Assembly: GCA_964199315.1 (NCBI GenBank)
Contig: OZ116700.1
Location: 6,262,001-6,326,000, forward strand
Source of the DNA: Orbicella franksi
Lineage: Eukaryota
Length of the DNA: 64,000 bases
Direction of reading: 5' to 3'
Made by a program: the position numbers and the translations under genes. Below, piece by piece: positions 1 through 23,000 of this stretch (its first letter is position 1; each line of letters begins with the position of its first letter). The notes under the pieces are model-generated. The model was not told the origin of the DNA, ran no database searches, and saw nothing but the letters and a program-made list of their open reading frames with translations.

Positions 1-53
1 CAGCAGTGCTTCGAAAACTACGAGTCCTGGTCGAGTCAAAACCTCCTTATTAG
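1..53 (+). CDS. Probable last codons of an upstream (off-window) kinase paralog
   Basis: Frame (T)AVLRKLRVLVESKPPY-TAG(51-53). The duplicate at 9865-9935 reads GTLEDVTAVLRKLRALVESKPSY*, resembling the terminal helix of the two kinases here (PTISDVIAVL, STMSDVITVL). Confidence 0.35.
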   Translation, partial: AVLRKLRVLVESKPPY

Positions 54-100
54 CAAGCCTGTTTTCAGTTCCTCAGGTTTGTTTCTTCGCCATTGATATA

Positions 101-511
101 CAGTCGAACCTCTCCACAAAGGCCACCTTGGGGACGAGGAAAGTGGCTGTTGTAGAGAGGTGGCAGTTATGGGGAGGTAGGGCTGTAATATGACACCTAT
201 TGTAGCATATAAACAAGAAACGCAATCAAGATATGTCGATAAAACAGAAATAACGTTAAGAAGGGATCAAGTTTCGTTACTTTTTCCGATGAAAAGTGGG
301 GTTTGTCTACACCTCTCGTCATTCGGTGATTTACTGGCCATTGTCGAGAGTATTTTGGCAGTTGCGACGAGTTTTAGTAGCCATTGCCGTTGTGGTCTTG
401 AGGAGAGGTGGCCTTTGTAGAGAGGTTAAATTAAGCGAATGTATGGACCGTCCGCCGGGACGTAAAAAAGTGGCCGTTTTAGAGAGGTGGCCGATAGTGG
501 AGGTTCGCCTG
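101..511. mobile_element. Tc1/mariner-pogo type MITE (second copy 9983-10394)
   Basis: TIRs CAGTCGAACCTC / GAGGTTCG(C/A)CTG flanked by TA on both sides; no transposase coding. Confidence 0.85.
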
Positions 512-526
512 TACAGAAGAAATCCT

Positions 527-855
527 CCCGAGGGGGGAGGGGTGGGGGAGAGACTTCCATATAGAAAGGACTGGGGTGCTGGTCGCAAATTCTGAAAAGA
601 ACCTCTAAGATGTACGAAGATCCTGTTTTGTGGGCGTGGCTTGAATTTTTTCACCCTAAGAGGTACCAACTCTAAGACAAAACATTATCTCCTGTCATAT
701 TTTTTCGTCTCAATACCATAAAAGGTACAGCAAAAGCTCCGCCTGTTGACCTTTTGAGGCTGAACACCCTAAGAGGTACCAAAACCATTTTTTTTTAACC
801 CCTTAAAAGTACGACGAGCACCCCCGTCCTTTATACATGGGAGTTTTCCCTCGGG
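527..855. mobile_element. GC-ended MITE family (copies 10410-10741, 22027-22237, 45351-45681)
   Basis: Termini CCCGAGGGG...CCCTCGGG with subterminal inverted CCCATAT/ATGGGAG and GGGGTGCT/AGCACCCC; shared core GATCCTGTTTTGTGGGCGT...CCCTAAGAGGTACC in all copies. Confidence 0.75.
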
Positions 856-1620
856 CAAATCCTAACAGGGACTTGCTTAAATGCGGAAAAAAATGTACTG
901 TCGATTCTTCATTTTTCAATAGGAAGACTTGCAACAGGATACAATTTGCTGAAAAGGTATACGTGCGAAAGTAGGCGGTAAATATGAACAGAGTGACAAA
1001 AAAGAAGTACGTAGGCAATCTTATGCCTTGCCGCTCGAGTGCTTTTGTTTTCACAGTTATTTATTATTCATTGTCTATAGTCATTACGTAGCGTGTATTT
1101 TGGGCATGAAAAGAGCTTCACAATGCATAATTGACATCAGCTAATATCAAGTTGTTTGGCCGTTGAATTATAAGCAGACTTCGAACACAGACGGATGTCC
1201 GCCTGTTTGTTTCAAGTAACAGTATATTCCGATCAGTTATACAACGACGTCCTCGAAGAAGATTAGATTTAACTTTGTTCTTCTCGGTACGGGGAGTCAA
1301 CTGAAGAAGTTTGTGCGTCCCTCTAAACTGAATTGAACTCCGTCGTAAGCCTTGGCCGACTGAAATCTTTTGTGTTAAAGAACGTGAGTCTCATGATTTT
1401 ACCACTGCTACGAAGATTCAGCCATGGGTAATACGGTAAGTTAGTGCTAACCTTGTTTCACCGCACTCTTTCTCAATATCGATGGATCGATTTGATAATG
1501 AGTTATAAAATCGCCTTTCCTGCTGGAGTTTTAACTCACGGTTGGCCAGTTAAAAATTCGCTTTACGATCCACTGTAACAATGGTAATAACATCTCAGCA
1601 TAGTCTTATGTTTACATGTA

Positions 1621-3242
1621 CCGTAGTTTCTCGGTTATAAGGCGCACGGTTTTTTCGAGGAAAATCTGTTTTTGCTTGGGAAGTTTTTGCCAAAATTGGG
1701 GTGCGCCTTATAGCCGAATATTTTCGCGCAAAAAAATCTAACGACAGCAATTTTACCGGAACTTACAGTTAAAACTAGACAAATAAAAGACACTAAACAT
1801 TGGTCATTGACTTTTTTAAGATTTGGTGGTTCTGAAAAGAACCGGGTGGCTCTGAAAAGAGCCGTTGTTGTTGTTTTGAAATTTATTGATGTCTAGTCTT
1901 CCTCCTCGCTATCCGTGTCAAACTCGTTCTCCAGTTCATCATCTGCTTCCTCGTCTCCAGCTTCTTCTTCGTCCCACACAGCTTCGTCCTCGGTGCCGTC
2001 CAGAGCATTTGATATTCCACAGCACTTGAATGAGTTCGCGATCAAATCAGCGGGTATCTCTTGCCATGCCTTTTGGATCCACTGCAAAACCAGTTCTTTG
2101 CTCGGCGCACGCTTCTTCCCCGACGGAGTGTAAGTGAACGGACCGTTCACCATCCAAGTCTGGTATTGGGATCGCACCTTGGTCTTAAAAGGTTTGTTGA
2201 TACACTTGTCCAGGGGCTGCAACACGGACGTAAGTCCACCCGGAATAACTGCGACTACTACGTTTCGCCTCGCCAGAAGATCTCTCACGGCGTTTGTCAA
2301 ATGCCCACGGAATGAATCCCACACGAGGAGAGCTCTTTGGTCTGGGGTGTACCGAAGATGGCGTCGAATCCACTCCATTACTCCTAGAAATTAATAAGAA
2401 ATACAGTCTTAGAATGCTAGAAAGCTTTATTATCAAGGCCGCATTGTGTTAAACAACTGCACGAGAAAAGCTAACAAACTGAAATTTGCATACGCGCGTA
2501 CGTGCTAAACAGCACGTGCTAGGTAACACGATACGTCAACAATGAAATTCGAATCTCGTTTCTGAGAAACAAGAAGTGTACTCGTCTCGCTCGCTTGTTG
2601 AAAAGATACTGCTCAGAATAAACAGTGTTTTAGCTTACCTTCTTCGTTCATCCAGCCCTTCTTGTGAACGGAGACCTGCATCCTTGGTGGCACGTTGATT
2701 TTCAGCTGTCGAACTCCTTTGAATATGACCTTCGGGGGAAGTTTCTCGCCGTTCGCTTTCACCGTTAGTGCAACTGTGAAACTCTGCTTGTCGGCACCGC
2801 ATGACAACACTGGAACTGTTCTATTCCCGGTGAACTCCAAGGTTCTGGATCTCTGGTTCTCGGATCGTTGAATATTTATTAGAATCTTTATAAAAAACGA
2901 AATATGTCTCCTGAGCAGGAAAGCTGAAATTAACGTGTATGCGTTGTCTGTTTACACGCAAGTTTATCATTAGAGGTGCGAACTTTTAGCTTTTGTTTTC
3001 GTGTATATCATTAAATGTGTGACTTTTTCACTTTTGTTGAAATTTGTTCACGTTTACAGAGAGTTCGCGTGCTAATTGTGCCAAGAGAATAAAATTTTAT
3101 CTTTATGAACTCTTCATTTCTTGGTGCGTCTTATAACCGAGTATTTTCACATAATTTTCAGTTTGGGAACTTTGCATGATTAAGTTGCCAAGTTTGGGGT
3201 GCGTCTTATAGCCGAGTGCGCCTTATAACCGAGAAACTACGG
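1621..3242 (-). mobile_element. Internally deleted pogo/Tigger DNA transposon
   Basis: Perfect 27-bp TIRs CCGTAGTTTCTCGGTTATAAGGCGCAC (1621-1647 / 3216-3242); TA TSD; empty site CATG-TA-TACGCC in the duplicate near 11507; subterminal GGTGCGYCTTATARCCGA repeats. Confidence 0.96.
1893..2840 (-). pseudogene. pogo DDE transposase remnant (two exons, N-terminal HTH missing)
   Basis: FTVALTVKANGEKLPPKVIFKG...GWMNEEG|VMEWIRR...LLVWDSFRGH...QPLDKCINKPFK and acidic tail; GT-AG intron 2384-2638 joins the two ORFs in frame. Confidence 0.9.
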
Positions 3243-5323
3243 TATACGCCAGTAGAAATCTGAGATTTCTGGCTAAAACAGTTATTGAGTATTAGACCCG
3301 GAAATTGTATGAACCTAATCTTCATTTCATGGTTATTTGTAGCTCTGTAATGTCCATCCGCTGACCAAAATAGCTTCACACCGTTAGCAATGATGTTATT
3401 TTCAGTCAGTATGCGAGAGTTTAATGACTTCTTCGTTTACTGGCTTGCATTTCACCTGTTAGTAACTCTTTTGGTGATGTAAGTCAAAATTTGCAAGGAT
3501 TATCTCGCAGTACGCCATAGAGACTTATCCGAGTAATAAATTTCGGACGCAGTAGGCAGTACTGGTGCCACTTTTCGCGCTTGTATAACACGTGTTTTAC
3601 ACTACAGAATGCAAAAGTAAATGAAAGAAAAACGCAAGAAAATGGCAATTGTTTCATTCATAGTGCTTGCGTTTAACTCAAAAGTGTAGTAGCTCTCGTA
3701 AGCTTGAAGGTTTTTTGCTTGTTAGCAGCTGTCATTGTTTTGGGGCAAGGGACATTGTTTCTGTTGTTTGTTCCTTTGTCCTCACAAAGGGTATCAAGCC
3801 ATTCATGTGAGAACTTAAGACAGCATCTACCCGACCCGTTTAACTGCGGTTTACTTTGCACTTTTTCGCGAGTTTTGTTAAGATGTTTTTGTGTCATTTA
3901 TTAATCGTGCGTTATAATTCAGTGGTTAATTAAAAAGGTAGATGAGCTGTCTATGGTGTTTTTCTTGTACACTTGGCGTCCGTTTAATTAATGTCGCCAG
4001 GAGACTGGGAGTTTAACTTTGTTCAATCTGTTGAAGCCTATAATCACCATCAACTGATCTGGTGCATATTTTTCAGGGTATAGAAGAGCTAGAAAGAATA
4101 GGACAAGTATCCGAATTTAACTTACAAGATTCTTTAGATGTTGAAAGATCTTTTCAAATTGTGGAGAACGAGAATGAAGAAAACACGGCACCTCCAGCCT
4201 CTTCAGGGATTCAGGATGTTGAAGAGTCAAGTGAAAAGCCGATTGCAAAAGCCAAAGGAAAGAAGGAGAAAAAACGTGAAAAATTCAAACAGGAGAGTTC
4301 CAACAAAAATGACGATGAACTTTTGGAAGTATATTTGGACAAACAAATTCCTCGTAACAAGAAGGCCATGAAAACAAAGTTGGAAAACGTATTGATTGAG
4401 TTACACCGTAAAAATGAAATTCTTGATCGCTTGACGAATGAGAGAGAGCGCCATTTGGAACGTATAGAGGAGAAAGAGAAAGTGATTGAAGGCAAAGACT
4501 TCGTCATTCAGTCTTTTGATGAGAAAATACAGGTTTTCAAACAACGGATCAAAGAGAAGGAGTCCGAGTTGAGAGAAAAAGAACGCTTGTTGAGAGAGGC
4601 AAACGAAAATGTCGACCAGTTAAACAGTGAGAACGAGAGATGCCTGGCAGAACAACTGCGTCTCTTGCAGCTGGAACGTGAACAGAAAGCAGACTTACAG
4701 GAAAGATTAAGAAATATGCAGATTCAAATGGATCAAGAAAGGAACAGGCGCATCTCTATTGAGAGAGAACTTACCGAGGAAAGATTGACCTTGCAGCAAG
4801 ATCGAGAGAACCTTGAACGAGAACGCGAACGTTACGAACAACGCATCCGCGACAGCGAAAGAAACGCGATCGAAAGCGAGCACCGCCTTCGAGAATTACA
4901 ATCAGCGGTATCTAGTGCGCGAGACACCCTGGCCGAGTATCGGCGACTCGAGCCACGTGATTGAGTCATCCGCCGTGACGAGGTCACCCTGTCTGAAAAC
5001 ATTTTAGGTGTAGGGGCCAGGGGCAAAGCCTACGAAGGCTCATTCCGCGGGTGTAAAGTTGCGGTGAAGCAGATTCACGAGCTTATCCTGTCTCCTCATA
5101 ATCGCAGATTGTTTGAGCGCGAAATGAGCATTGCGTCGCGTTGTCGACACCCGCATCTACTTCAGTTCATAGGCGCGACAAACGACGACGGAAGCCCATT
5201 GTTTGTGACGGAGTTGCTGGACACAGACTTGAGGAACATTTTGAACCAGCGCGCGTTACATCAAGAGGAGATCGTTTGCCTCGCTTTGGATGTTTCTCGC
5301 GGACTGAACTATCTCCATCTTAA

Positions 5324-8111
5324 GGTGGTCTTATACCCTAAAAATGAAATTTTTTATTAACTATCTTTGAATATATCTTTTTATACCATCTTATAGATTA
5401 TCACTTCCTGACTCCAAAATAACTGTTTTCACCTCGCGAATGTTAATAGTTAATGATTAACCAGCCCCCCACTGGTGAAAAATGTGGGTCTATTATAAGC
5501 AGCATAACTCCGCTTAGAATGGTCACAGAAAAGTAAAATTAGCTTTATTCTATTTCAAAATAAATTACCCAGGTGTTAAACCTCAAAAAACAAGGAAACT
5601 ATGATTGCTTTGATAATTTTTCCTATGAAAAAGGGAAAGCAATGACAGATACTTCAAAAACATTTTTACTGCAAGTACAGTGTTAAACATTCCCAATTTT
5701 TTTGAGGTTTGTCACCAAGGGAATAACATCAGGAAATAATGCTGAAAGTTTCAAGTCAATTAGTTAAAACCCCACAGAGATATCCTGCTTGGAAGTGTCG
5801 CAATTTGGTAATTTTCATAATTTGAGAAAAATGGTTCTAAAGTTGAGACATAATTTAATGAGATAATGTTCTTCTCATTTTTAATGAAATAACCTCAATT
5901 AAACTTTTTTCAGCCACAGTTTTGCTTGATAGCATTAAATAAGAGTTCAGAAGGATCCTGAGGCATAAGTCACTCCTTCTGTTTCTTGTGCTTGATCCCC
6001 TTTTTGTTTTCGACGGGCTCGAAGCAACTTTCTTTTTCGCTTAGAGGTATCTGTTTCTTTGTAAATTGCTTTGCCAAGCCTCAGTTTGTCACTTCTTTTC
6101 ATTTCCTCAACACAGAACTCCCCAGGTTCAATTCCACTGTTTGTGAGTGTATTTAATGCTGCTTGGCTTCCAATATTGAAGTGGGAAACAGCATCATTCA
6201 CTCCAAGCTTTAAAGTGTCAGCTCCCACAAACACATCTTTTGGCACTCGGTCCCATATCATCCCATTTATGGCTTCATTTTGATTCTGGGTCTTTCCATC
6301 CAAGCACCTGGTCAGCAGAGCATCCTCACTCAGCCTGAAGTAAATTGGCTTAAGCTCAGCAATGATTTCAACAGGGAGCCCAGGACCTGGTTGAACAACT
6401 TTGTACCATTTGCAATGTCTCTGTTGAAGCGACACCAGCTGTCTGCTCCTTCAGGGCAATAACAATGTAAATTGCGATCCTTTGAAGAGGCACAATGCAT
6501 GAGGCTAGCATAAATTGCCTTCTTCATTTCCGATAGATTGCCAACATTGCTTCTTATGGCAATCCCATTATAATTTTGCAGCCTGTCTATCATTCTATCA
6601 GTCAGCTTTCCTTTACCGCCCATACCTTTTTTCTCTTTCTTTAGTTTTCTTAAAGCTGTCCCCACACGCTTCTGGACATGTCCAACACATTCTTTCTTTA
6701 CAACTTTAAGTCCTTTGTCTATGTAAGTCTTCTCTACTCCATTGAAACCCTTGCTATCTCCATCCCCATAATATTCAGTGTAACGCAATTTGTGTTTTTC
6801 CTCACTTCTCTCAAAGATTCGCTTCACTCCTTCTGTTTCCATTGATGGAGCTGAGCCTTTAAAATTTGCTTTGCATTTTGGGGCATGGTTTATCTGCCAC
6901 TCCTGCTCTGCTTGGAGATCATTATTGGTCTCATGTCTTTGGCAGGTCTGGCAGACTTTGCTCAGCAGTTCAACATCAAGGCATTTCCCTGTATCAATTG
7001 ATAATACTGCTACACAACCATTCAATGAAGAGTGGCCTCTTTTCTGCCAGGTCCCATCGCAAGAAACCCCACAGTTTGAAAATCCTTCGACATCTTCACC
7101 TTTCAAATGGTGAATTTCTTTTTGGGCATCATTCATGGTCTGATTGGCCACAGCTTTTGCTGCTTTGAGCAAAGCTTTGTTGTGCTTACTGTATGCCTTT
7201 GGTTTTGGTGGGGGTGGCATGTTCATAATTCCACAAAATCTCCTAGCTGATGCTTCCCCTTGCGCAATCGTTCTCATCCCATAAACAAGTCTTCTGTTCA
7301 CCTCATAATATCTTGATATCTTTTTAGACGTGTAAAAACAATGGTTACACCCACAGTCCAAGCATAATAATCGAAGACATGATGCACAACCATGCCTTTT
7401 AAAGGATACCTCTGTTAACTGAATATTTGACTCACCACACTCTTGGCAACACAAAAGCCTCAATACATCAGCCAAGATTTCCACATCCATTAGACGATAT
7501 CCACTCAGACTGCTGCTGATTATTTCTTCTTTTTCTTCTTTAACCTCAAGCTTGGCCTTGATCTTCCTTTCTGAGGCAGACTGGATAGTTACATTTTCGT
7601 CGATAGGTTTTTCGATTTTCGCCGATTTAGGACTTCTCTGCATATGCTGATTTCCGTGGAACTTACGTTTACGGGGTCTATTGCCAGTTCTAGCCATCTT
7701 ATATCCAAATCTCTTTTGAAACCACAAAAGAAAGCTAAAACTTTACTCGAAGAAAAGCGAATGACACATTCGTCGATCGAAAGCCAAAAGTTTTAGTCCG
7801 TACGAAAAATATGGCCAGCGGTAAACACTATAAGAGCTACCAAATCATTTCCTCTAGAGAGCGGTCCCAGGGGCAAAATGGTTTCTTCACGATTTTGAAC
7901 CAACAACTGTAAACAGTCGTTGTTAGGGGCGTTGCTATGGCCAAAAATTAGACATATCAGTAGTTTTTGATACATTTTTCGTACAAATGACTTTTTCTGG
8001 TCAAAAACACCCTGGAATAATGCAAAGGGATGGTTAAAGAGTCTATTTATGACGTTTTCAAAAAATCGACCTTGTACGCAAAAAATGCGATTTTTAGGGT
8101 ATAAGACCACC
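5324..8111 (-). mobile_element. Kolobok-like DNA transposon, near full length
   Basis: Perfect 22-bp TIRs GGTGGTCTTATACCCTAAAAAT; TTAA TSD at 5320-5323 and 8112-8115; excision restores NYLHLNKPFPIMHRD. Superfamily call rests on the TTAA TSD plus GG..CC termini. Confidence 0.85.
5947..7697 (-). pseudogene. Transposase of the Kolobok-like element (about 583 aa, one frameshift)
   Basis: MARTGNRPRKRK start, Cys-rich zinc-finger-like region, CDGTWQKRGHSS, YYGDGDS, KKECVGHVQKR, TQNQNE. Two overlapping ORFs joined by one missing base near 6391 (TTC AA- CCA GGT). Confidence 0.85.
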
Positions 8112-8554
8112 TTAATAAACCTTTTCCCATCATGCACAGAGACATAAGTAGTTCCAACGTGTTGCTATGGAGACGGGATAACAGTTGGAGGGCCAAGTTA
8201 TCAGACTACGGAGCGGCAAATTTCATGCGTCAGTACATGACGGAGAATCCCGGAGCAAGGATTTATGCAGCGCCAGAGGCTCTCACTTCTCAACAGTCTC
8301 CAAAGGTGAGAAGAAATTTAGTAGTGAGGAAATTTCTGAATTCTTTTGGCCCGACACATTTCTATTTTATAAGGAACGAGGGGAGGAGGTGGGGCAACAA
8401 ATGATTCCTTACCTCCACACCTCCTCCTTTTTTTGCTCACCCCCTCTCCACTTCTCCCCATTTTTTCTCACCCCAGGCGCGCTCGTTTGCTTGCTCGCTT
8501 TCTCAATCTCTTCGCCTAGAAGATAGAAAGGAATCGTCTGCTAGTCAGGCTATC

Positions 8555-8758
8555 GTGCTTTTAAAGGCGCGCTCCTGTGGAGACAACCCTGCGAACACCC
8601 ATACCTGTACTCGATGTGGTAGAGACTGTCACTCCAGAATCGGACGGACCTGTCACAGCCGACGCTATTCCAAACGTGACGTCACCACAGCACCAAACGA
8701 TGACCCAGCGCATACTGACCGATGGAGGTCGACACTGACCGATGACGAAGACTTTTAA
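8555..8758 (+). mobile_element. RTE-clade LINE 3' fragment in intron of kinase A
   Basis: Translates as HTCTRCGRDCHSRIGRTCHSRR, the C-terminal CxxC...H motif typical of RTE ORFs, followed by a short repeated tail (CTGACCGATG x2). Confidence 0.7.
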
Positions 8759-9474
8759 CGAATATTCTTTACTTATTGTACTATTTTCCTCACAAACTTG
8801 TCTCTTGTTTTCTTCTAGGCGGACGTTTACAGTTTCGGTTTATTGTTGTGCGAGATGTGCATCAGAGAGCTTCCAGACCCTCAGCAGATCGACCAACAAA
8901 TAGTCCTGGTAACTAACGGTGTCCTTCGAGAGCTCATTATGCGTTGTGTCGAGTGGCATCCCGAAGCCCGTCCCACTATAAGTGACGTCATAGCAGTGTT
9001 GACGCAGCAAGCGGAGTCTTAACGAGCACAGGGACTGGTGACAATCAATGGAAGGACGGCTACCTTGTAGAATCTTATCCCTCAATCTTTATTTGTCTTT
9101 ATCTCGAGATTTGAGACTCTTTTTAAACGTCCAAGTTCTCTTTATAGACTTTTATGCCGTTCGATAAGATGTTTTATCGTCGCGCTTATTTGTGTTTTTA
9201 TGCTTTACAATGCAATAAATATAATAGTCATGTTATGTCTGTGACACTTGGTATTGTATGTCTTTGGGAAGCACTTAGTTACTTGGACTGTAGGGAAATC
9301 GAGCGCTGTCAGCCGCTACCCAAGTATCCGAGAACCTGGGTAAAGCGTGTGCCGTCCACTAGGGAAATACGCTTTGTTTAACTCGGCAAAAGGAGATGAC
9401 TAATCCATGGAGTGCAGTGGGGCGGGACGCATCATCTATGACTAATAAACTCGTTATTTTGTATGTAGGAACTA

Positions 9475-9854
9475 GGGCCCCGATCACACTACGCCGGAGA
9501 AATTTGAAAACAGAGGTTTCACTCTGAAAACGCATCAAATGTTTTCCGTCCACACTACGCCGGAGAAATTTAAAACCCAAGAATCACTGGCCATTTTGGA
9601 GTTGTGTTTGAGCATGGATAGTACAGTCTTCTACTATCCATGGTTTGAGGAAAACTCGGTCAGCAAAATCACATGATTGTCGTGACACCAGCGACTTCGA
9701 AAAGCTCCGTTTTCAAAATGTTTTCCGTCCACACGAAAACGAAATGTCAGCGTTTTCAAATTGCTCCTGTGTGAAGGGCGTTTTCGAAAAGCACCGTTTT
9801 CGTGACGGATTAGTGTGGACGGTAGGCCTAACCGTAGAAATAGAGCGGCGTTTT
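9475..9854. mobile_element. PIF/Harbinger-like MITE, right end truncated at the duplication boundary
   Basis: Left end GGGCCCCGATCACACTACGCCGGAG; colinear with the complete copy at 29274-29632 until about 9854. Confidence 0.75.
9613..9642. mobile_element. 30-bp hairpin micro-element with 7-bp TSD (P-superfamily-like termini)
   Basis: CATGGATAGTA-cagtcttc-TACTATCCATG flanked by GTTTGAG repeats; absent from the sister MITE near 29395-29403. Confidence 0.75.
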
Positions 9855-9882
9855 ACTTTAGTAGGGACGCTTGAAGATGTCA

Positions 9883-12800
9883 CAGCAGTGCTTCGAAAAC
9901 TACGAGCCCTGGTCGAGTCAAAGCCTTCTTATTAGCAAGCCTGTTTTCAGTTTCTCAGGTTTGTTTCTTCGCCATAGATATACAGTCGAACCTCTCCTCA
10001 ACGGCCACCTTGGGGACAGAGGAAAGTGGCCATTGTAGAGAGGTGGCAGTTATGGGGAGGCAGGGCTGTAATATGACACCTACTGTAGGATGTAAATAAG
10101 TAACGCAATCAAGATATGTCAATGAAACAGAAATAACGCCAAGAAGGGATCAAGTTTCATTACTTTTTCCGATGAAAAGTGGGGTTTGTTTCCACCAGTC
10201 GTCATTCGTTGATTTACTGGCCATTGTCGAGAGTATTTTGGCAGTTGCGACGAGTTTTAGTAGCCATTGCCGTTGTGGTCTTGAGGAGAGGTGGCCTTTG
10301 TAGAGAGGTTCAATTAAGCGAATGTATGGACCGTCCGCCGGGACGTAAAAAAGTGGCCGTTTTAGAGAGGTGGCAGATAGTGGAGGTTCGACTGTACAGA
10401 AGAAATCCTCCCGACGGGGGAGGGGGTGGGGGAGAGACTTCCATATAGAAAGGACTGGGGTGCTCGTCGGAAAATTCTGAAAAGAACCCCTAAGATGTAC
10501 GAAGATCCTGTTTTGTGGGCATGGCTTGAAATTTTTTCACCCTAAGAGGTACCAACTCTAAAACAAAACATTATCTCCTGTCATATTTTTTCGTCTCAAT
10601 ACCATAAAAGGTACAGCAAAAGCTCCGCCTGTTGACCTTTTGAGGCTGAACACCATAAGAGCTACCAAAACCATTTTTTTTTAACCCCTTAAAAGTACGA
10701 CGAGCACCCCCGTCCTTTATATATGGGAGTTTTCCCTCGGGCAAATCCTAACAGGGACTTGCTTAAATGCGGAAAAAAATGTACTGTCGATTCTTCATTT
10801 TTCAATAGGAAGACTTGCAACAGAATACAATTTGCTGAAAAGGTATACGCGCGAAAGTAGGCGGTAAATATGAACAGAGTGACAAAAAGGAAGTACGTAG
10901 GCAATCTTATGCCTTGCCGCTCGAGTGCTTTTGTTTTCACAGTTATTTATTATTCATTGTCTATAGTCATTACGTAGCGTGTATTTTGGGCATGAAAGAG
11001 CTTCACAACGCATAATTGACATCAGCTAATATCAAGTTGTTTGGCCGTTGAATTATAAGCAGGCTTCGAACGTAGATGGGTGTCCGCCTGTTTGTTTCAA
11101 GTAACATAGTATACTCCGGTCAGTTATACAACTACTTCCTCGAAGAAAAGTGCATTTAACTTTGTTTCTCTCGGTAGAGTCAACTGAAGAAGTTTGTGCG
11201 TCCCTAAACTGAATTGAACTACGTCGTAAGCCTTGGCCGACTGAAATCTTTTGTGTTTATAAAGAACTTGAGTCTTATTACTTTACCACAGCTACGAAGA
11301 TTCAGCCATGGGTAATACGGTAAGTTAGTGCTAACCTTGTTTCACCGCACTCTTTCTCAATATCGATCGATGGATCGATTTGATAATGAGTTCTAAAATC
11401 GCCTTCCCTGCTGGAGTTTTAACTCACTGTTGGCCAGTTAAAAATTTGCTTTACGATCCACTGTAACAATGGTAATAACATCTCAGCATAGTCTTATGTT
11501 TACATGTATACGCCAGTAGAAATCTGAGATTTCTGGCTAAAACAGTTATTGAGTATTAGACCCGGAGATTGCATGAACCTAATCTTCATTTCATGGTTAT
11601 TTGTAGCTCTGTAATATCCATCCGCTGACCAAAATAGCTTCACACCGTTAGCAATGATGTTATTTTCAGTCAGTATGCGAGAGTTTAATCACTTCTTCGT
11701 TTACTGACTTGCATTTCACCTATTAGTAACTCTTTTGGTGTTGAAAGTTAAAATTTGCAAGGATTATCTCGCAGTACGCCATAGAGACTTATCCGAGTAA
11801 TAAATTTCGGACGCAGTAGGCAGCACTGGTGCCACTTTTCGCGCTTGTATAACACGTGTTTTATACTACAGAATGCAAAAGTAAATGAAAGAAAAACGCA
11901 AGAAAATGGCAATTGTTTCATTCATAGTGCTTGCGTTTAACTCAAAAGTGTAGTAGCTCTCGTAAGCTTGAAGGTTTTTTGCTTGTTAGCAGCTGTCATT
12001 GTTTTGGGGCAAGGGACATTGTTTCTGTTGTTTGTTCCTTTGTCCTCACAAAGGGTATCAAGCCATTCATGTGAGAACTTAAGACAGCATCTACCCGACC
12101 CGTTTAACTGCGTTTTACTTCGCACTTTTTCGCGAGTTTTGTTAAGATGTTTTTGTGTGTCATTTATTAATCCTGCATTATAATTCAGTGGTTAATTAAA
12201 AAGGGAGATGAGCTGTCTATGGTGTTTTTCTTGTACACTTCGCATCCATTTAATTAATGTCGCCAGGAGACTGGGAGTTTAACTTTGTTCAATCTGTTGA
12301 AGCCTATAATCACCATCAACTGATCTGGTGCATATTTTTCAGAGTATAAAAGAGCTAGAAAGAATAGGACAAGTATCCGAATTTAACTCACAAGATTCTT
12401 TAGATGTTGAAAGATCTTTTCAAATTGTGGAGAACGAGAATGAAGAAAACACGGCACCTCCAACCTCTTCAGGGATTCAGGATGTTGAAGAGTCAAGTGA
12501 AAAGCCGATTGCAAAAGCCAAAGGAAAGAAGGAGAAAAAACGTGAAAAATTCAAACAGGAGAGTCCCAACAAAAATGACGATGAACTTTCGGAAGATTAT
12601 TTGGACAAACAAATTCCTCGTAACAAGAAGGCCATGAAAACAAAGTTGAAAAACGTATTGATTGAGTTACACGGTAAAAATGAAATTCTTTCTAAAGGCA
12701 AGCCAATTCTTGATCGCTTGACGAATGAGAGAGAGCGCCATTTGGAACGTATAGAGGAGAAAGAAAAAGTGATTGAAGGCAAAGAGTTCGTCATTCAGTC

Positions 12801-12902
12801 TTTTCATGAGAAAATGCAGGTTTTCACACAACGGATCGAAGAGAAGGAGTCCGAGTTGAGAGAAAAAGAACGCTTGTTGAGAGAGGCAAACGAAAATGTC
12901 GA
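9883..12902 (+). repeat. Segmental duplication, copy 2 (left boundary somewhere in 9855-9883)
   Basis: Matches 1-1620 + 3245-4615. Confidence 0.97.
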
Positions 12903-15344
12903 ACTACTGCAAAAGCAACTTGCTGAGCAAGAGGGGATCGTGAAAGAAATGCAGAGCGCGATGGAGAGTTTGAGCAACAAAAATACAAACCATACCCGTC
13001 AATCGCAAAGTGCGCTCAGAGCTGATTTAGACACCAGAGTTGAACTTGAATCGCTCAGAAGAGAGAACGAACGATTCAAACTTCAAATACAAGAAAAAAT
13101 CAGCACCCTGAGAGAGAGGGAGCAAGAGATTAATTCACTCAAGCGAGAAAAAGAAACTATGCAGCAAGAGAAAAGAGAGAGTGAAAAGATCAGCCTTGAA
13201 CGAAAGTTTTCGGTGGACAGGTTAAACAGAGAGAAAGAGAGAGGCCTGGCTTATCTTGGGCAACTAGAGATAAGATTAACAGAAAAAGAACAGGCCTTGA
13301 GGCAGGCGAGCAATGAACGTGCTGAACTGCGAGATCAACTGAGGCGGAAAGAAACTCTCCTTTTGGAGAAAGACAGAACTTTGGAGACTCTGGAGAACTC
13401 AAGGAAAGGTACAACTGACCGCTTGGATCGACTAGAGAAACAATGGCAGGACGAGAGAAGAGCGCAACGAAGTGCGTACGATACGTTACGTGACGAGAAG
13501 CGTGCTTGCGAAGAACGTTTGCAACGTGCTGAAACGGACGTGGAAACGTATCAAAGACGCATTCGCGTCCTAGAACACGAGATGGAAAGAGCTCGTCAAA
13601 CCACCGACATCTTCCGCGGGGATCAGCCGTGGATGATCTCGAGAGATGAAATCAAACTCTCCGACAAGGTCCTGGGTACTGGGGCGTGGGGAAGAGTTGT
13701 GGAAGGGAATTTTCGAGGTACGAAAGTGGCTGTGAAAGAAATCCACGAAATCATTCAGTCAGCACACAACAGGCTTCTGTTTGATCGCGAAATCACTTTT
13801 GCTACCTTAGTGAGACATCCCTGTATTTTACAGTTCTTGGCTGTGGCCGAATACCGCACTAGTAAGCCACTGTTAGTTGCAGAGCTCATGGATATGTCTC
13901 TCTCGCAATTAGTAAGGGATGAAAAATCTCTGGGCAATCGATTCATCCGAATTCTGGCGCTTGACGTGGCTTACGGACTCAACTATCTTCACTGCTTTCG
14001 GCCCAATCCCATTCTTCATCGTGACGTCAACAGTGGTAACGTCATGGTTTGGCGCCAAGGTGACAAGTGGCGCGGGAAACTCTGTGATTTTGGGTCAGCG
14101 GAGTTCATGGGCAGCAAAATGTCAGAGAATCCGGGCAATCCGTTTTACTCAGCTCCTGAGGCAAGCAACTCGAGCCAATCTCCCAAGGTAGGGCACTCAC
14201 ATTTATATCTTTTCATTTACTGAACTGTTATCTCTGTTATCTGGTTATTAATGAAACACTGAAGAAGCTCCCTAACTTTGTAGTCGTAAGTTTCCGTGCG
14301 CTGGATTTCAAACCAATAGGTCGAGATTAGAACCATACCTGGGGTCATTGTGTACGCTATTTAATTTTTTTCCTGGGACATATTTCGCTCTCACTGTGCC
14401 GGCCTTTCTAACCAGGACCGGGTTGTTCAAAGCAAGGTTAAGGCCACTCAAGATTACTGTAAGTTTTGATCCACTTTTGAGTTTGTAACTTTAAATAATT
14501 TGAATTTTGGTTCACTTTTGTACCTTTTAGTAAGGTCTGCTTTTTCCAGTTTTTGCTGTTCATTTCTGACCTGACTAATTTCAAACGATTAAATCAATGG
14601 CAATGACTGAAAGAGAAATCAGTGCCTCGGTCGGCTTGTTCAAAAGTCCGGATAGGCAGTATTCCTGGATTAGAGCTTGATCAAGCTTTTGTTGACGAGA
14701 TAAAACGGAAATCAAAATTTTCATTGACCCTGGATCTGCCTTTTGTCAGTGTTTAGAAAATATCGTCCTTGCGGTGTCTGACTTCATGATGATAAACCTT
14801 TTTTCCTTTGGTAACTAGGACGAGGCGAGCGTGGCCGAGTGGTTAGGGCGCCGGACTTGAAATCCGGAGGTAGCGGTTTCAGGTCCCGCTCTGACCACTA
14901 AGCTGGAGATATTTCTCGGTATAGACCCTAGTTCAACTCCTCGGACATGCTTGTAAATAGCCAACTGGTTTGCTTCCCCCCAGTTGGGATTTTCAAGCCC
15001 GTGTTATGTTCAGTTGATATATTTGTTTCTTTCAGTTTAAGTGACATGCCAGTAAACTAGCTAGGTGTAGCTAAGTGCATTGACCACTTTAAACAGTAAG
15101 ATTTGAACATTTTGAACTCTTTCTTTAATTGTCTCCCAAACAGATCGATGTTTACAGTTTCGGTGTACTTCTTTGTGAGCTTTGCATAAACCAAACACCC
15201 AATCCTGATGAAAGAGAGCGACAGATTGCATTGATGTGGAACAAAAATCTGCGAGATTTAACAGAGCAGTGTATTACAAAGGATCCCTCCAGGCGCTCTA
15301 CAATGAGTGACGTCATTACTGTGTTAGAGCCGATGACCATGTGA
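11308..15344 (+). CDS. Coiled-coil + TKL-like Ser/Thr kinase, copy B (apparently intact, about 685 aa)
   Basis: Exons 11308-11319 (gccATGGGTAATACG|gtaag; linkage inferred), 12343-14187, 15144-15344; all phase 0, 2058 nt. Motifs GTGAWG, VAVK, HRDVNSGN, DFG, APE, DVYSFG. Confidence 0.85.
14819..15118 (+). mobile_element. tRNA-derived SINE in last intron of kinase B
   Basis: A-box TGGCCGAGTGG (14832-14842), degenerate B-box, core GTAAATAGCCAACTGG...CCAGTTGGGATT shared with 45779-46070. Confidence 0.8.
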
Positions 15345-20100: not shown

Positions 20101-21417
20101 AAACTTTATGAGGTAGTTTCTATTTTAAAAGGCATTGCTTTGATTTTATATCTCCTCAGCTTGGGTGACCGCCATGGCAGCGGGAAGCATGCATGCGTTT
20201 GGAATGGTTTCCGCTCTCCTTGGTAACCGGCTTGGATTCGCTAACGTCATTGTGTTGGGTGGACTCGCATGTGCTGTTGGGATGTTTACGTCATCGTTCG
20301 CCACAAATATCTACTTACTTTACTTAACTTATGGTTTGGTGTGGGGCTTGGGCTCTTGTCTTTGTTACTGTTCCGCTTTGTTTCTGCTTCCTCAGTTTTT
20401 CCGGGCGCGACTCGGCTTAGCCAATGGGATCGTATTTTTTGGAGCTCCAGTTGCTACTCTGGTTTATAGTGCAGTTATGCAGAAACTTTTCAATTACTTG
20501 GGATTGGCAAAGACCTTTCGAATTTTAGCTGGAGTGCAGCTGGTTTTAGTGCTTTGTGGATTTATTACAAGATCGATTCTTTCACTTGGGTTTGACCAAA
20601 TTGAGTTGAAAAATATCAAGAAATCTAGTTTTGATTGGTCGATATTCAAGAACAAAAGCTTCATGGTTTTTGTGGCGTCCCTGTGCATGTTTATGCCTGG
20701 TTACTTGGTTCCTTATGTGCATTTAGTAAGTTAACATATCCTTCTTTGTTTTCGTCCTTTCATTCATCCTCCCTCCTTCCCTTCTGCTCTTCTTTTCAGC
20801 TCACAATTTATTACTGACTAATTGATTATTTCTTTTATCAGGTTCGACTTGCTAAGGATTCCGGTGAAACCTCCAACAGAGCAGTGTTTTTGGTTAGCTG
20901 TTTAGGGTTTGGTTCGTTAACAATTCGTCCTTTCTTTGGCAAATTCCTGGACCTGCCTCGAGTCAGTCGCTTAACCACTCTACAGATCACACTTCTCTTA
21001 ATCAGTGTTTTCACGACTCTTGTTCCCATAGCAACCAATTACGAATGGCTAGCAACCTATGCATTTATGTATGGTCTCCTAGAGGGATGTTTTTTAATTT
21101 CCTTGCCGTTAATTGTACAAGACTTAGTTGGAGACAGCAAATTGGCGTCTGCCCTGGGTACCTTGTACTGCCTTCTTTCTATCCCTAAAACCGCTGGCCC
21201 CTCGATCGCGGGCTGGATATACGACACATTTGACAGTTATGCCGTGGCGTTTTTTTGCGCAGGGGGATTTGCGATGGTTTCTACGTGTATTTTGTTAATG
21301 GTTCCACTGTTTAGAACGAATATTAATTCATTCTCCAGAAGTAAAGAGCTTGTTCATCTCGTGGTACGTTCCGAGTGCAACAACGAAGAGATCATAGGGA
21401 AAGAAACCTGTTTGTAG
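17149..21417 (+). CDS. Monocarboxylate transporter family (SLC16/MFS), 453 aa
   Basis: Exons 17149-17368, 20160-20725, 20842-21417 (1362 nt, frame-consistent). N-terminal DEGCSW motif, TAWV, multiple TM helices, YTFL-like GLLEGCF and AGWIYD motifs. Confidence 0.88.
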
Positions 21418-23000
21418 TTACAGTTATACTGAAGAGACGTCACCTGTTGCAATAACATAGAGTCAATATTGTCAGAGAGCACAATTATACGTTCTTTTTG
21501 AGCTCACAATCTTATTGTTAATTATTGGAGCACTAATTAAACTATCTTCAAAGAACGGTTGCTAATTCTTTCTACAATAGTAGTTTTAAACTTCTTCAAG
21601 TCGAAAGTCGCGTGTGGATTGAATTGTTCTTTGAAACTTCCGGGGAAGTGAATTACCTTGTAAAAATGTCCATTCTTAATGTGCCCCGAAGCATCGTCCC
21701 CGGCCGGGGAATTATGCGGACGACCTCCAACCCCTTGGCAGTTATAGTTCACTACCAAATGTTACCTTTCTCGTCCCTGACAAAAACTCATCACGTGGTA
21801 TGCTCAATTACCTTATAGAGTGTCCATCTATGGGTTGCTTTCAGACATTATAGCTCACCATTTAATTTTCTCCGATTCTTAGTATTGGCGGAGAGACACG
21901 ATCTGCCCTTATAATCCATCAAATACTATCATTCGGACGCGATTGGTCTAAACGCGTCACATGACTGAATATTCCTCAGCTAAAACTGTTGAGTGATATT
22001 CCCCAATTTCCCAAACCACGCGTGTTGGAAAGGCCGGGATGCTCGTGGAAAATTTCGTGAGAAATTTTGAAAAGAACCCCTAAGAGGTTCTAAGATCCTG
22101 TTTTGTGGGCGTCACTTGAATTTTTATTCATCCCTAAGAGGTATCAATTCTAAAACAAAACATTATCTCTGCCCTTTGAACCGCTAAAAGGTATGACGAA
22201 CACCTCTGTCCTTTTCATATGGGAGTCTCTCCCCCGGAGGGGGGAGGGCTTGAAAAATATTTGTAGGTCAATAAATTAAACAAAATAGCCACCGTGAGTT
22301 GGCGCGAAAATATGATCGGATATTTGTCCTTTGACATTATCTGTACCTCAGAGCTTTCAGTTTTCGGTTCTCTGAACAGATTATGTCCGCAGACAAATAT
22401 CCGAGCATATTTTCGTACGAAATGGAGGCTATTGTTTACATGGAACCTCGACAGAAAAAAATCTATTGTTACAATAGCGTTTGATAGCTCAGCCCAACAG
22501 ATTGCAACGTTGGCAGTTAGGAACAATGAGATGAAAACATTCTCACATCTTACATAGAGGATATTACATGACCGCGCGGGGATGCGAATTATATTCCCGA
22601 CCTCAGTTGAAGTGACCACTGTTTTCGGTGCAAATACGGAGATGTCTTAGATTTCGAGAAGATTAAATATTAGATATCCAGAAGATTAAATGGCCACTTG
22701 GGAATACCATGAGAGATACCATCTTTAAAGATAAAATTTGTATCTCCGTGCGTTATGTAAAATACTCTATAGAATGGGAGTCTTTCCTCGATGTCACCCG
22801 CTCCTCATTTCATATTTTCTGTTACCCTGACAATCTATTTGCCAACGGAATCAGACCTGGCAAGTATTTAATTCCGTAATGAACAGATTTATACCCTGCT
22901 CAACCCTGCTTTAAGTTATCTGGGGATTTTATTTTGGTATTTTTTTGACAGACTTGTTTTCTTCATAAAAGCGAGGAAGGAGTGGCGGAGTGGAGGGGGG

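Follow-up and report, generated by a model that had tools for sequence, protein, structure and literature searches.

A hybrid gene between two coiled-coil kinase genes of Orbicella franksi and its probable origin in a tandem duplication

Three tandem plus-strand genes, here called Z, A and B in their order along the contig, form part of a coiled-coil kinase array of the coral Orbicella franksi, and the middle one is a hybrid of its neighbours: the 5′ end of A comes from its downstream parent B and its 3′ end from its upstream parent Z. We regard A as very probably the junction gene of a tandem duplication that spanned Z and B. The stretch of DNA analysed, referred to below as the window, comprises 64,000 nt of a 497-Mb genome (G000:C3:6262001-6326000; contig OZ116700.1) and opens in the middle of the array. 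All positions are window coordinates and negative numbers lie upstream of it.

The proposed course of events is as follows. A unit of ~5.5 kb, reaching from the middle of exon 2 of Z to the middle of exon 2 of B, would have been duplicated in tandem. The join between the copies would have created A by fusing the promoter and ~180 N-terminal codons of B in frame to the distal coiled coil and kinase of Z, both parents being left intact. Some 100 B codons would subsequently have been lost with a short B-type remnant staying at the join, an order of later deletions that we infer, and the copies would have gone on exchanging sequence by gene conversion. Finally, the kinase half would have decayed in the assembled haplotype through a nonsense codon, a glycine-loop change, a transposon and a late stop.

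A unit present twice and the order of descent

Blastn comparison of the window with itself aligned A 1-1620 with B 9883-11508 (94.7% identity) and A 3242-4615 with B 11506-12902 (95.8%). This agrees with a preliminary description of the same DNA, in which a near-identical block of promoter, MGNT exon, intron and coiled coil had been noticed in two places. That description let the block begin at position 1; in fact it extends beyond the upstream edge of the window, and its A copy is interrupted by a transposon (1621-3241). Comparison of the 8 kb upstream of the window (L062) with the window locates the intact gene Z 0.3-2.6 kb before position 1 and extends the matches on both sides of A: Z -2554..-1881 corresponds to A 4647-5320 (97.8% identity), Z -1886..-407 to A 8107-9612 (89%), -413..-255 to 9643-9801 and -180..1620 to 9696-11508 (94%). 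Because the matched segments add up to -2554..4615 and 4647..12902, they are read as a single unit duplicated head to tail, with two copies of one contiguous sequence that measure 5549 and 5464 nt once private transposons are removed.

The unit starts with the distal half of Z exon 2, takes in intron 2 and exon 3 together with the 3′ flank and, past the intergenic region, includes the promoter, exon 1, intron 1 and the opening ~180 codons of the next exon 2. Its first intergenic and promoter copy, upstream of A (1-1423, plus strand), shares 95.5% identity with 9883-11307 when aligned sites without gaps are counted (4.45% mismatches) and reaches back past the window start to about -180, meeting the 3′ end of Z there. 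The second copy of the 3′ flank, intergenic region and promoter, upstream of B, occupies 9643-11307 (plus strand), as delimited by the self and upstream comparisons. Both A and B begin with a short coding exon for MGNT (ATGGGTAATACG) followed by a gt donor, at 1424-1435 and 11308-11319, respectively, and their exon 2 acceptors lie at 4077 and 12343.

Aligned in register, A and B are near-identical up to ...AATGTCGA at 4615/12902 and no better than random afterwards, precisely where the earlier reading of the sequence had placed the end of identity. The open frames cross this break in both genes (open reading frames, ORFs, 4062-4964 in A and 12328-14223 in B), as had also been reported, and the kinase motifs are those previously listed, HRDISSSN/DYG in A and HRDVNSGN/DFG in B. 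We refer to the ~180 codons of A exon 2 derived from B as gamma (4077-4615, equivalent by sequence match to B 12343-12902), to the Z-type sequence as alpha and to the own coiled coil and kinase of B as beta. Past the break, B-type identity stops at 4615 and Z-type identity starts at 4647. The first alpha part (4647-5323, plus strand; a copy of Z -2554 to -1878, 97.8% to Z) encodes coiled coil and kinase N-lobe. The second (8116-8305, plus strand) carries the catalytic loop HRDISSSN and DYG and runs to SPK and a gt donor, according to the splice model and the Z comparison. Exon 3 (8819-9070, plus strand), which holds the end of the kinase C-lobe, is placed by an exon 2-exon 3 splice in RNA (loose ends at 8306).

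A recent chimera made by recombination had been proposed before. What stands of that proposal is that the promoter, exon 1, intron 1 and ~180 codons of B are joined in frame to a different kinase module; the event would be a tandem duplication and not an exchange between two existing kinases. The kinase of A, described there as divergent from that of B, turns out to be a copy of the upstream gene Z.

Related assemblies supply the state without A. In three of them, whose B region matches at 89-93% DNA identity (L069, L071 and L072), and in a more distant one (L070), a Z-type gene, one promoter region and a B-type gene follow each other, and both genes are contiguous across the breakpoint positions. 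Among related corals, every assembly with a contig long enough to include the upstream gene thus has Z followed by B without an A-like gene in between, and a fifth assembly (contig of P0062) has the Z-type followed by the B-type gene, by gene calls only. A maximum-likelihood tree of kinase domains pairs A with Z as its sister within the Z-orthologue clade and places B and its orthologues in a separate long-branched clade with 100/100 support. The 5′-module and kinase relationships, whose comparison had been suggested as a check, are indeed incongruent, the 5′ part of A grouping with B and its kinase part with Z. Taken together, the Z-B order of the relatives and the kinase tree identify Z and B as parents and A as derived. 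The donor direction, once thought beyond the reach of the window, is thus settled by the upstream gene and these comparisons: A as a derived hybrid, Z and B as intact parents.

A different history would do without any unit duplication, A being an old third paralogue with its 5′ part overwritten by gene conversion from B. The abrupt identity boundary at 4615/12902 and the signs of gene conversion elsewhere in the locus would fit such a history, which we nevertheless consider highly improbable: the 3′ half, intron 2, exon 3 and 3′ flank of A all copy Z (89-98%), the flank runs on into the promoter copy, the related assemblies have no third gene in this place and the A kinase nests within the Z-orthologue clade. 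Recent conversion of the 5′ half of Z from another locus was rejected as well, there being no near-identical copy (the best match is 46% in protein). A search of other assemblies returned no full-length relative of the 295-residue ORF of A, a blank that means little given that an intact exon 2 ORF (~517 residues) would have lain just beyond its length limits.

Anatomy of the junction and probable exchange between the copies

Between the B-type and Z-type parts of A lie 31 nt (4616-4646, plus strand) that match B 13218-13248 (plus strand) at 26/31 positions, compared with 18 for the next best placement and a maximum of 21 in 500 shuffles. They form the core of a 39-nt match between 4611-4649 and 13213-13251 (32/39) that the preliminary description had pointed out and attributed to older homology. 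The match itself was confirmed. Its attribution was not, since Z and three Z orthologues have unrelated sequence at this position, which makes the 31 nt a B-type remnant and not old Z-lineage homology. The segment is unique, no other copy within 3 mismatches having been found genome-wide. Relative to B, A is without 12903-13217 (315 nt, 105 codons), and the frame is kept.

A second A-type haplotype, here H2, comes from another public assembly (protein P0043, genomic contig L075). H2 joins B 12909 to 13212 (a 303-nt loss), and the present assembly has the same join minus four more codons. The 31-nt segment has its homologue within the longer B-derived sequence of H2. The switch to Z is found at B 13469 | Z -2526 in H2, with a 4-nt overlap (AACG), and at B 13248 | Z -2554 in the assembly, with a 2-nt overlap (GC). 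A template switch guided by GTCGA / GTGGA pentamers was entertained for the first join and dropped, as H2 has 12 more nt there.

Nucleotide similarity between Z and B was not detected around the breakpoints, and none of the joins shows extended homology. The distance from breakpoint to kinase differs between the parents by 22-42 codons, so the extended homology at equivalent positions expected of unequal homologous crossover (Lepore / anti-Lepore type) is missing. Anti-Lepore hybrid globin genes arise by unequal crossing-over within long, highly similar sequence at homologous positions. The coral locus shares their arrangement, with parent 1, a hybrid (5′ of parent 2 plus 3′ of parent 1) and parent 2 in a tandem array of paralogues, and differs from them in that its Z/B breakpoints lack detectable nucleotide similarity and overlap by 2-4 nt. 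Judged from these joins, the event would not be a classical homologous unequal crossover, even though its product has the anti-Lepore arrangement.

A closer parallel is provided by Drosophila yakuba, for which tandem duplications placed without regard to gene boundaries have been documented at population scale; they fuse the 5′ end of a gene to the 3′ end of the adjacent one (PMC5460883). The geometry is alike: the segment starts in one gene and ends in the next, the 5′ and regulatory part of the downstream gene meets the 3′ end of the upstream gene, and the parents stay intact. Unlike in those cases, the parents here are paralogues of one kinase family and the product is in frame and domain-preserving; moreover, the coral junction has undergone additional deletions and retains a piece of the 5′ parent, and the copies keep exchanging sequence. 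This is a known route to new genes and no new mechanism.

Divergence between the unit copies is patchy, 2-7% over most of their length and 9-18% in intron 2. Next to the junction, A and Z show 0 differences over 273 nt (4647-4919; L062 5447-5719) followed by 3-5%, a run with P about 6e-5 under a local rate of 3.5%. Gene conversion among Z, A and B would be the simplest reading of this pattern, and for that reason the low divergence beside the junction does not date the event. The 273-nt identical tract itself looks like a recent conversion tract that ends where homology ends. At the other extreme, the 3′ part of A intron 2 (8666-8913) has 29 private differences at 220 aligned sites and is 18% from Z, far above its surroundings; it could be an old unconverted stretch or sequence from elsewhere.

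The junction is also found in material independent of this assembly. The 31-mers sampled from 4380-5320, only 45% of which are common to Z or B, were recovered at 73-96% in 20 public runs; these belong to 13 studies and are labelled with three organism names or as coral metagenomes. A contig assembled from polyadenylated (polyA) RNA aligns to 4558-6309 with 1 mismatch, bridging the junction, an in-frame TGA and the left end of the TTAA transposon described below, and a second polyA RNA contig (6494-8306) continues spliced into exon 3. DNA runs X14 and X15 contain the right junction of the same transposon, and RNA run X5 contains the left one. Searching for the exact 45-nt junction recovered a cDNA-like JGI contig (L074) in which A exon 1 (144/144 over 1293-1436, 92% to B) is spliced from its donor to an acceptor at 4293 and followed by A-type gamma, the 31 nt and alpha. 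This structure indicates that the hybrid's own promoter copy is active and the junction real. A is transcribed, spliced and polyadenylated. Raw stranded reads put the RNA on the plus strand; most of them carry the diagnostic bases of Z (8251, 8269) and are thus little informative about A.

These data bear equally on whether the tandem copy is an assembly artefact, in which haplotypes or collapsed repeats were stitched together. Copies that are ~95% alike in a highly heterozygous coral could invite such an error. Against this stand the lack of N runs, the private transposon in each copy, the unique junction segment, the A-specific 31-mers in all those runs and the independent RNA and JGI contigs that cross the junction, and we give the artefact very little credence.

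Some observations do weigh against a single duplication as the origin of A. The divergence of the unit copies, ranging from 0% to 18%, does not fit one event with clock-like decay unless gene conversion is invoked. Support for the junction consists of assembled contigs and 31-mers, and among the mapped contigs no DNA contig bridges 4615-4647, the bridging records being RNA or transcript contigs. Finally, the junctions differ between the assembly and H2, each holding sequence that is missing from the other (H2 retains B-type 13212-13383 and 13423-13469, ~220 nt more B remnant than the 31 nt of the assembly), which calls for at least one further rearrangement or for separate origins.

Two independent Z/B duplications or crossovers, one behind the A gene of the assembly and one behind that of L075, would explain why the second junctions differ and are mutually private, and private gamma differences (15 and 18) do outnumber the shared ones. 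On the other hand, nearly the same ~100 B codons are gone in both, the first junctions are only 12 nt apart, and both A genes have in common 5-6 derived substitutions in gamma, a derived base within the 31-nt segment and a Gln-to-Arg change at 4920. These derived states, common to both junction forms, favour a single origin as judged from the sequences compared, and separate origins seem improbable.

Decay and possible survival of the hybrid

In this assembly, A can encode no more than a 299-residue coiled-coil protein (MGNT plus 295 residues) without kinase. An in-frame TGA at 4962-4964 falls just before the kinase domain, where Z, its orthologue and B encode Trp, the first two with TGG. The glycine loop has a Trp-to-Arg change at 5019-5021 (GVGARG vs GVGAWG), and exon 3 has a premature stop at 9020-9022, 16 codons ahead of the native stop at 9068-9070. 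The largest lesion is a 2.8-kb transposon on the minus strand (5324-8115) that has inverted ends of 36 nt and is flanked by a duplicated TTAA target; it splits the kinase exon after LNYLHL and ahead of NKPFPIMHRD, 9 codons before HRD. Excising it together with one TTAA copy restores the Z reading exactly. Its minus strand has long Mutator-like (PF20700) transposase ORFs. A second near-identical copy was not found in this assembly (the next best is 66% over ~430 nt); in one DNA run the left end adjoins a different flank, indicating that copies exist elsewhere in other individuals.

The uninterrupted features of an active protein kinase (Pfam PF00069: glycine loop, VAVK lysine, HRD, DFG/DYG) are thus present in B and Z and not in A. 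The four lesions, with the relaxed constraint described next, class A as an unprocessed pseudogene, although possibly only this haplotype is dead. For the assembled haplotype, its sequence indicates that the catalytic half of A is dead. The claim that a shared module had been coupled to a different catalytic module accordingly holds for the in-frame fusion and fails here for the kinase, which is broken.

Changes were polarised with L069. On the A branch, the alpha part of exon 2 has 15 changes, 8 of them nonsynonymous, including TGG to TGA at 4962 and the glycine-loop Trp to Arg; the gamma part has 14 nonsynonymous and 0 synonymous changes and has lost 7 codons by deletion. Synonymous changes number 6 on the Z branch and 1 on the B branch, and nonsynonymous changes 0 on both. 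The nonsynonymous:synonymous counts of 22:7 on the A branch and 0:7 on the parental branches differ (Fisher p = 0.0004), and constraint on A appears relaxed relative to its parents. Within A, the open frame upstream of the TGA has 15:0 nonsynonymous:synonymous changes against 7:7 downstream (Fisher p = 0.002). We do not claim positive selection from this contrast, because site-based tests are not significant and the Logan contigs are paralogue mosaics.

It is possible, though we hold the idea only tentatively, that the hybrid is alive in the population, with intact A alleles acting as a working chimeric kinase, the N-terminal coiled coil under diversifying selection and the assembly's copy as a null allele. 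L075 contains an A-type gene with an open 565-residue ORF through both junctions and the kinase, without TGA or transposon, and continues into A's own downstream flank (98.1% to 9643-10322, vs 91% for the copy after Z). Likewise, the transcript contig L074 has the junction of this assembly in an open 497-residue ORF. The gamma substitutions shared by both A lineages fit the same idea, as do their 25 nonsynonymous and 2 synonymous gamma differences, a ratio of nonsynonymous to synonymous rates (dN/dS) of about 3 vs 0.085 for B against an outgroup. Each of the six coding indels in the A lineage has a length divisible by three.

Each of these points has its counterpart. The kinase halves of L074 and L075 are Z-like at diagnostic sites (23/23 and 134/139), starting inside the 273-nt A/Z identity, within which an assembler could have crossed from A to Z and produced both contigs; their open ORFs may therefore represent intact A alleles kept Z-like by conversion or mere switching of assembler paths. 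The excess of dN/dS over 1 (values 1.8-3) is not significant (Fisher p 0.13-0.75), and the broken form is the one present in the 20 runs. In coiled-coil DNA, with its heptad periodicity, indel lengths divisible by three tend to prevail in any case, so the pattern may reflect selection for an open frame or simply this periodicity.

With still less confidence, we speculate that the Z/B hybrid is young and segregating: some colonies would have an intact kinase under the B promoter and others the expressed 299-residue truncated form, the N-terminus diversifying and conversion keeping the kinase Z-like. The truncated form would share the N-terminal module of B and part of the Z coiled coil. If true, a module-shuffled signalling kinase would be naturally polymorphic in a reef coral, both for its presence or absence and for functional or null alleles.

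Regarding transcript forms, exon 2 has an alternative in-frame acceptor at 4293 in A and at about 12559 in B that joins MGNT to ESSNKNDDE... and skips 72 codons; its use in A is evident from an RNA contig (loose end at 4292) and from L074. N-myristoylation of MGNT was considered and is not claimed, the PROSITE-type pattern failing at position 6.

Parent genes, the kinase family and neighbouring elements

Both parents are adjacent, in the same (plus) orientation and still intact. The exon 2 ORF of Z is open over 589 residues and includes an unrelated N-terminal coiled coil of its own, and exon 3 of Z is normal as well; NCBI gives the name of an Orbicella faveolata kinase to a Z-type protein that is 99% identical across the half of the query region that matched. 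In B, the intact exon 2 (12343-14187, plus strand; ORF, Pfam and splice model) is made up of gamma (12343-12902), which ends at the right end of the duplicated unit, and beta (12903-14187), and exon 3 (15144-15344, plus strand; splice model) ends with the stop at 15342-15344. The B model has 685 residues, as many as the independent protein P0001 (98% identity), and full-length orthologues at 64-98% identity occur in many other coral assemblies.

The kinase halves of A and B are ~45% identical in protein and have no nucleotide similarity. Z and B are old paralogues, ~45% identical in the kinase, and all three genes belong to coiled-coil plus TKL-type protein kinases. Their kinase domains match Pfam Pkinase / PK_Tyr_Ser-Thr, and the best relatives of the B domain with solved structures are TNNI3K, CTR1 and TAK1/MAP3K7 of the TKL group (E 1e-11 to 2e-20), at low identity and with no orthology claimed. 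Unlike these, the coral family has an N-terminal acidic and coiled-coil architecture within a single large exon. The B kinase sits on a very long branch of the kinase tree, apart from all other family members.

A protein search of the genome found at least 20 paralogues of the family, mostly clustered on contig C13, where the main arrays of coiled-coil kinases lie at 11.36-11.80 Mb and 2.47-2.58 Mb; these comprise 17 copies or more, and several of the copies have internal stops. The gamma-type N-terminal module is confined in this genome to A and B, which points to one event and not to cluster-wide module swapping. A resemblance to diversification of immune-type gene families, as suggested earlier, is conceivable; the observations are this confinement and a dN/dS of 1.8-3 that is not significantly above 1.

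Several repeats accompany the locus. Intron 1 of A harbours the remnant of a pogo-like transposon (1621-3241; Pfam DDE_1 E 3e-19) with 29-nt inverted ends (1619-1647 / 3216-3244) and a TA duplication; it is absent from B, which has the empty site at 11508. A repeat of ~160 nt in intron 1 (about 11943-12102) recurs dozens of times across the genome. A dispersed repeat of ~300 nt (82-88% identity, both orientations) occurs in the duplicated promoter region (546-850 and 10430-10736) and at two further window sites (22055-22235 and 45372-45674). Lying 3′ of the kinase gene is a ~90-nt tandem repeat, with more units after Z (L062 7640-7910, window -360..-90) than after A (9696-9801). Downstream of B, an MFS-transporter-like gene (20139-21449) is syntenic in L069, L071 and L072, where Pfam MFS_1 is matched, at 91-93% DNA identity.

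About a third of coral genes are tandem duplicates (PMC10236652). The array studied here resembles the clusters of that survey in being a lineage-specific tandem family expansion in a coral genome; the survey counts whole-gene duplicates and mentions neither kinases (0 occurrences) nor natural hybrid genes. The locus is a natural coral example of tandem duplication reshuffling exons and a promoter, and its parents, hybrid, outgroup state, junction, conversion and decay can all be read from the DNA. Large tandem kinase arrays of corals would accordingly yield new domain combinations and not just extra copies. Most chimeric genes made by such duplications in D. yakuba are lost, loss being their usual fate (PMC5460883), and the array offers a concrete locus for asking whether hybrids of this kind are kept or lost in corals. 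Its significance would rise with confirmed intact alleles and diversifying selection.

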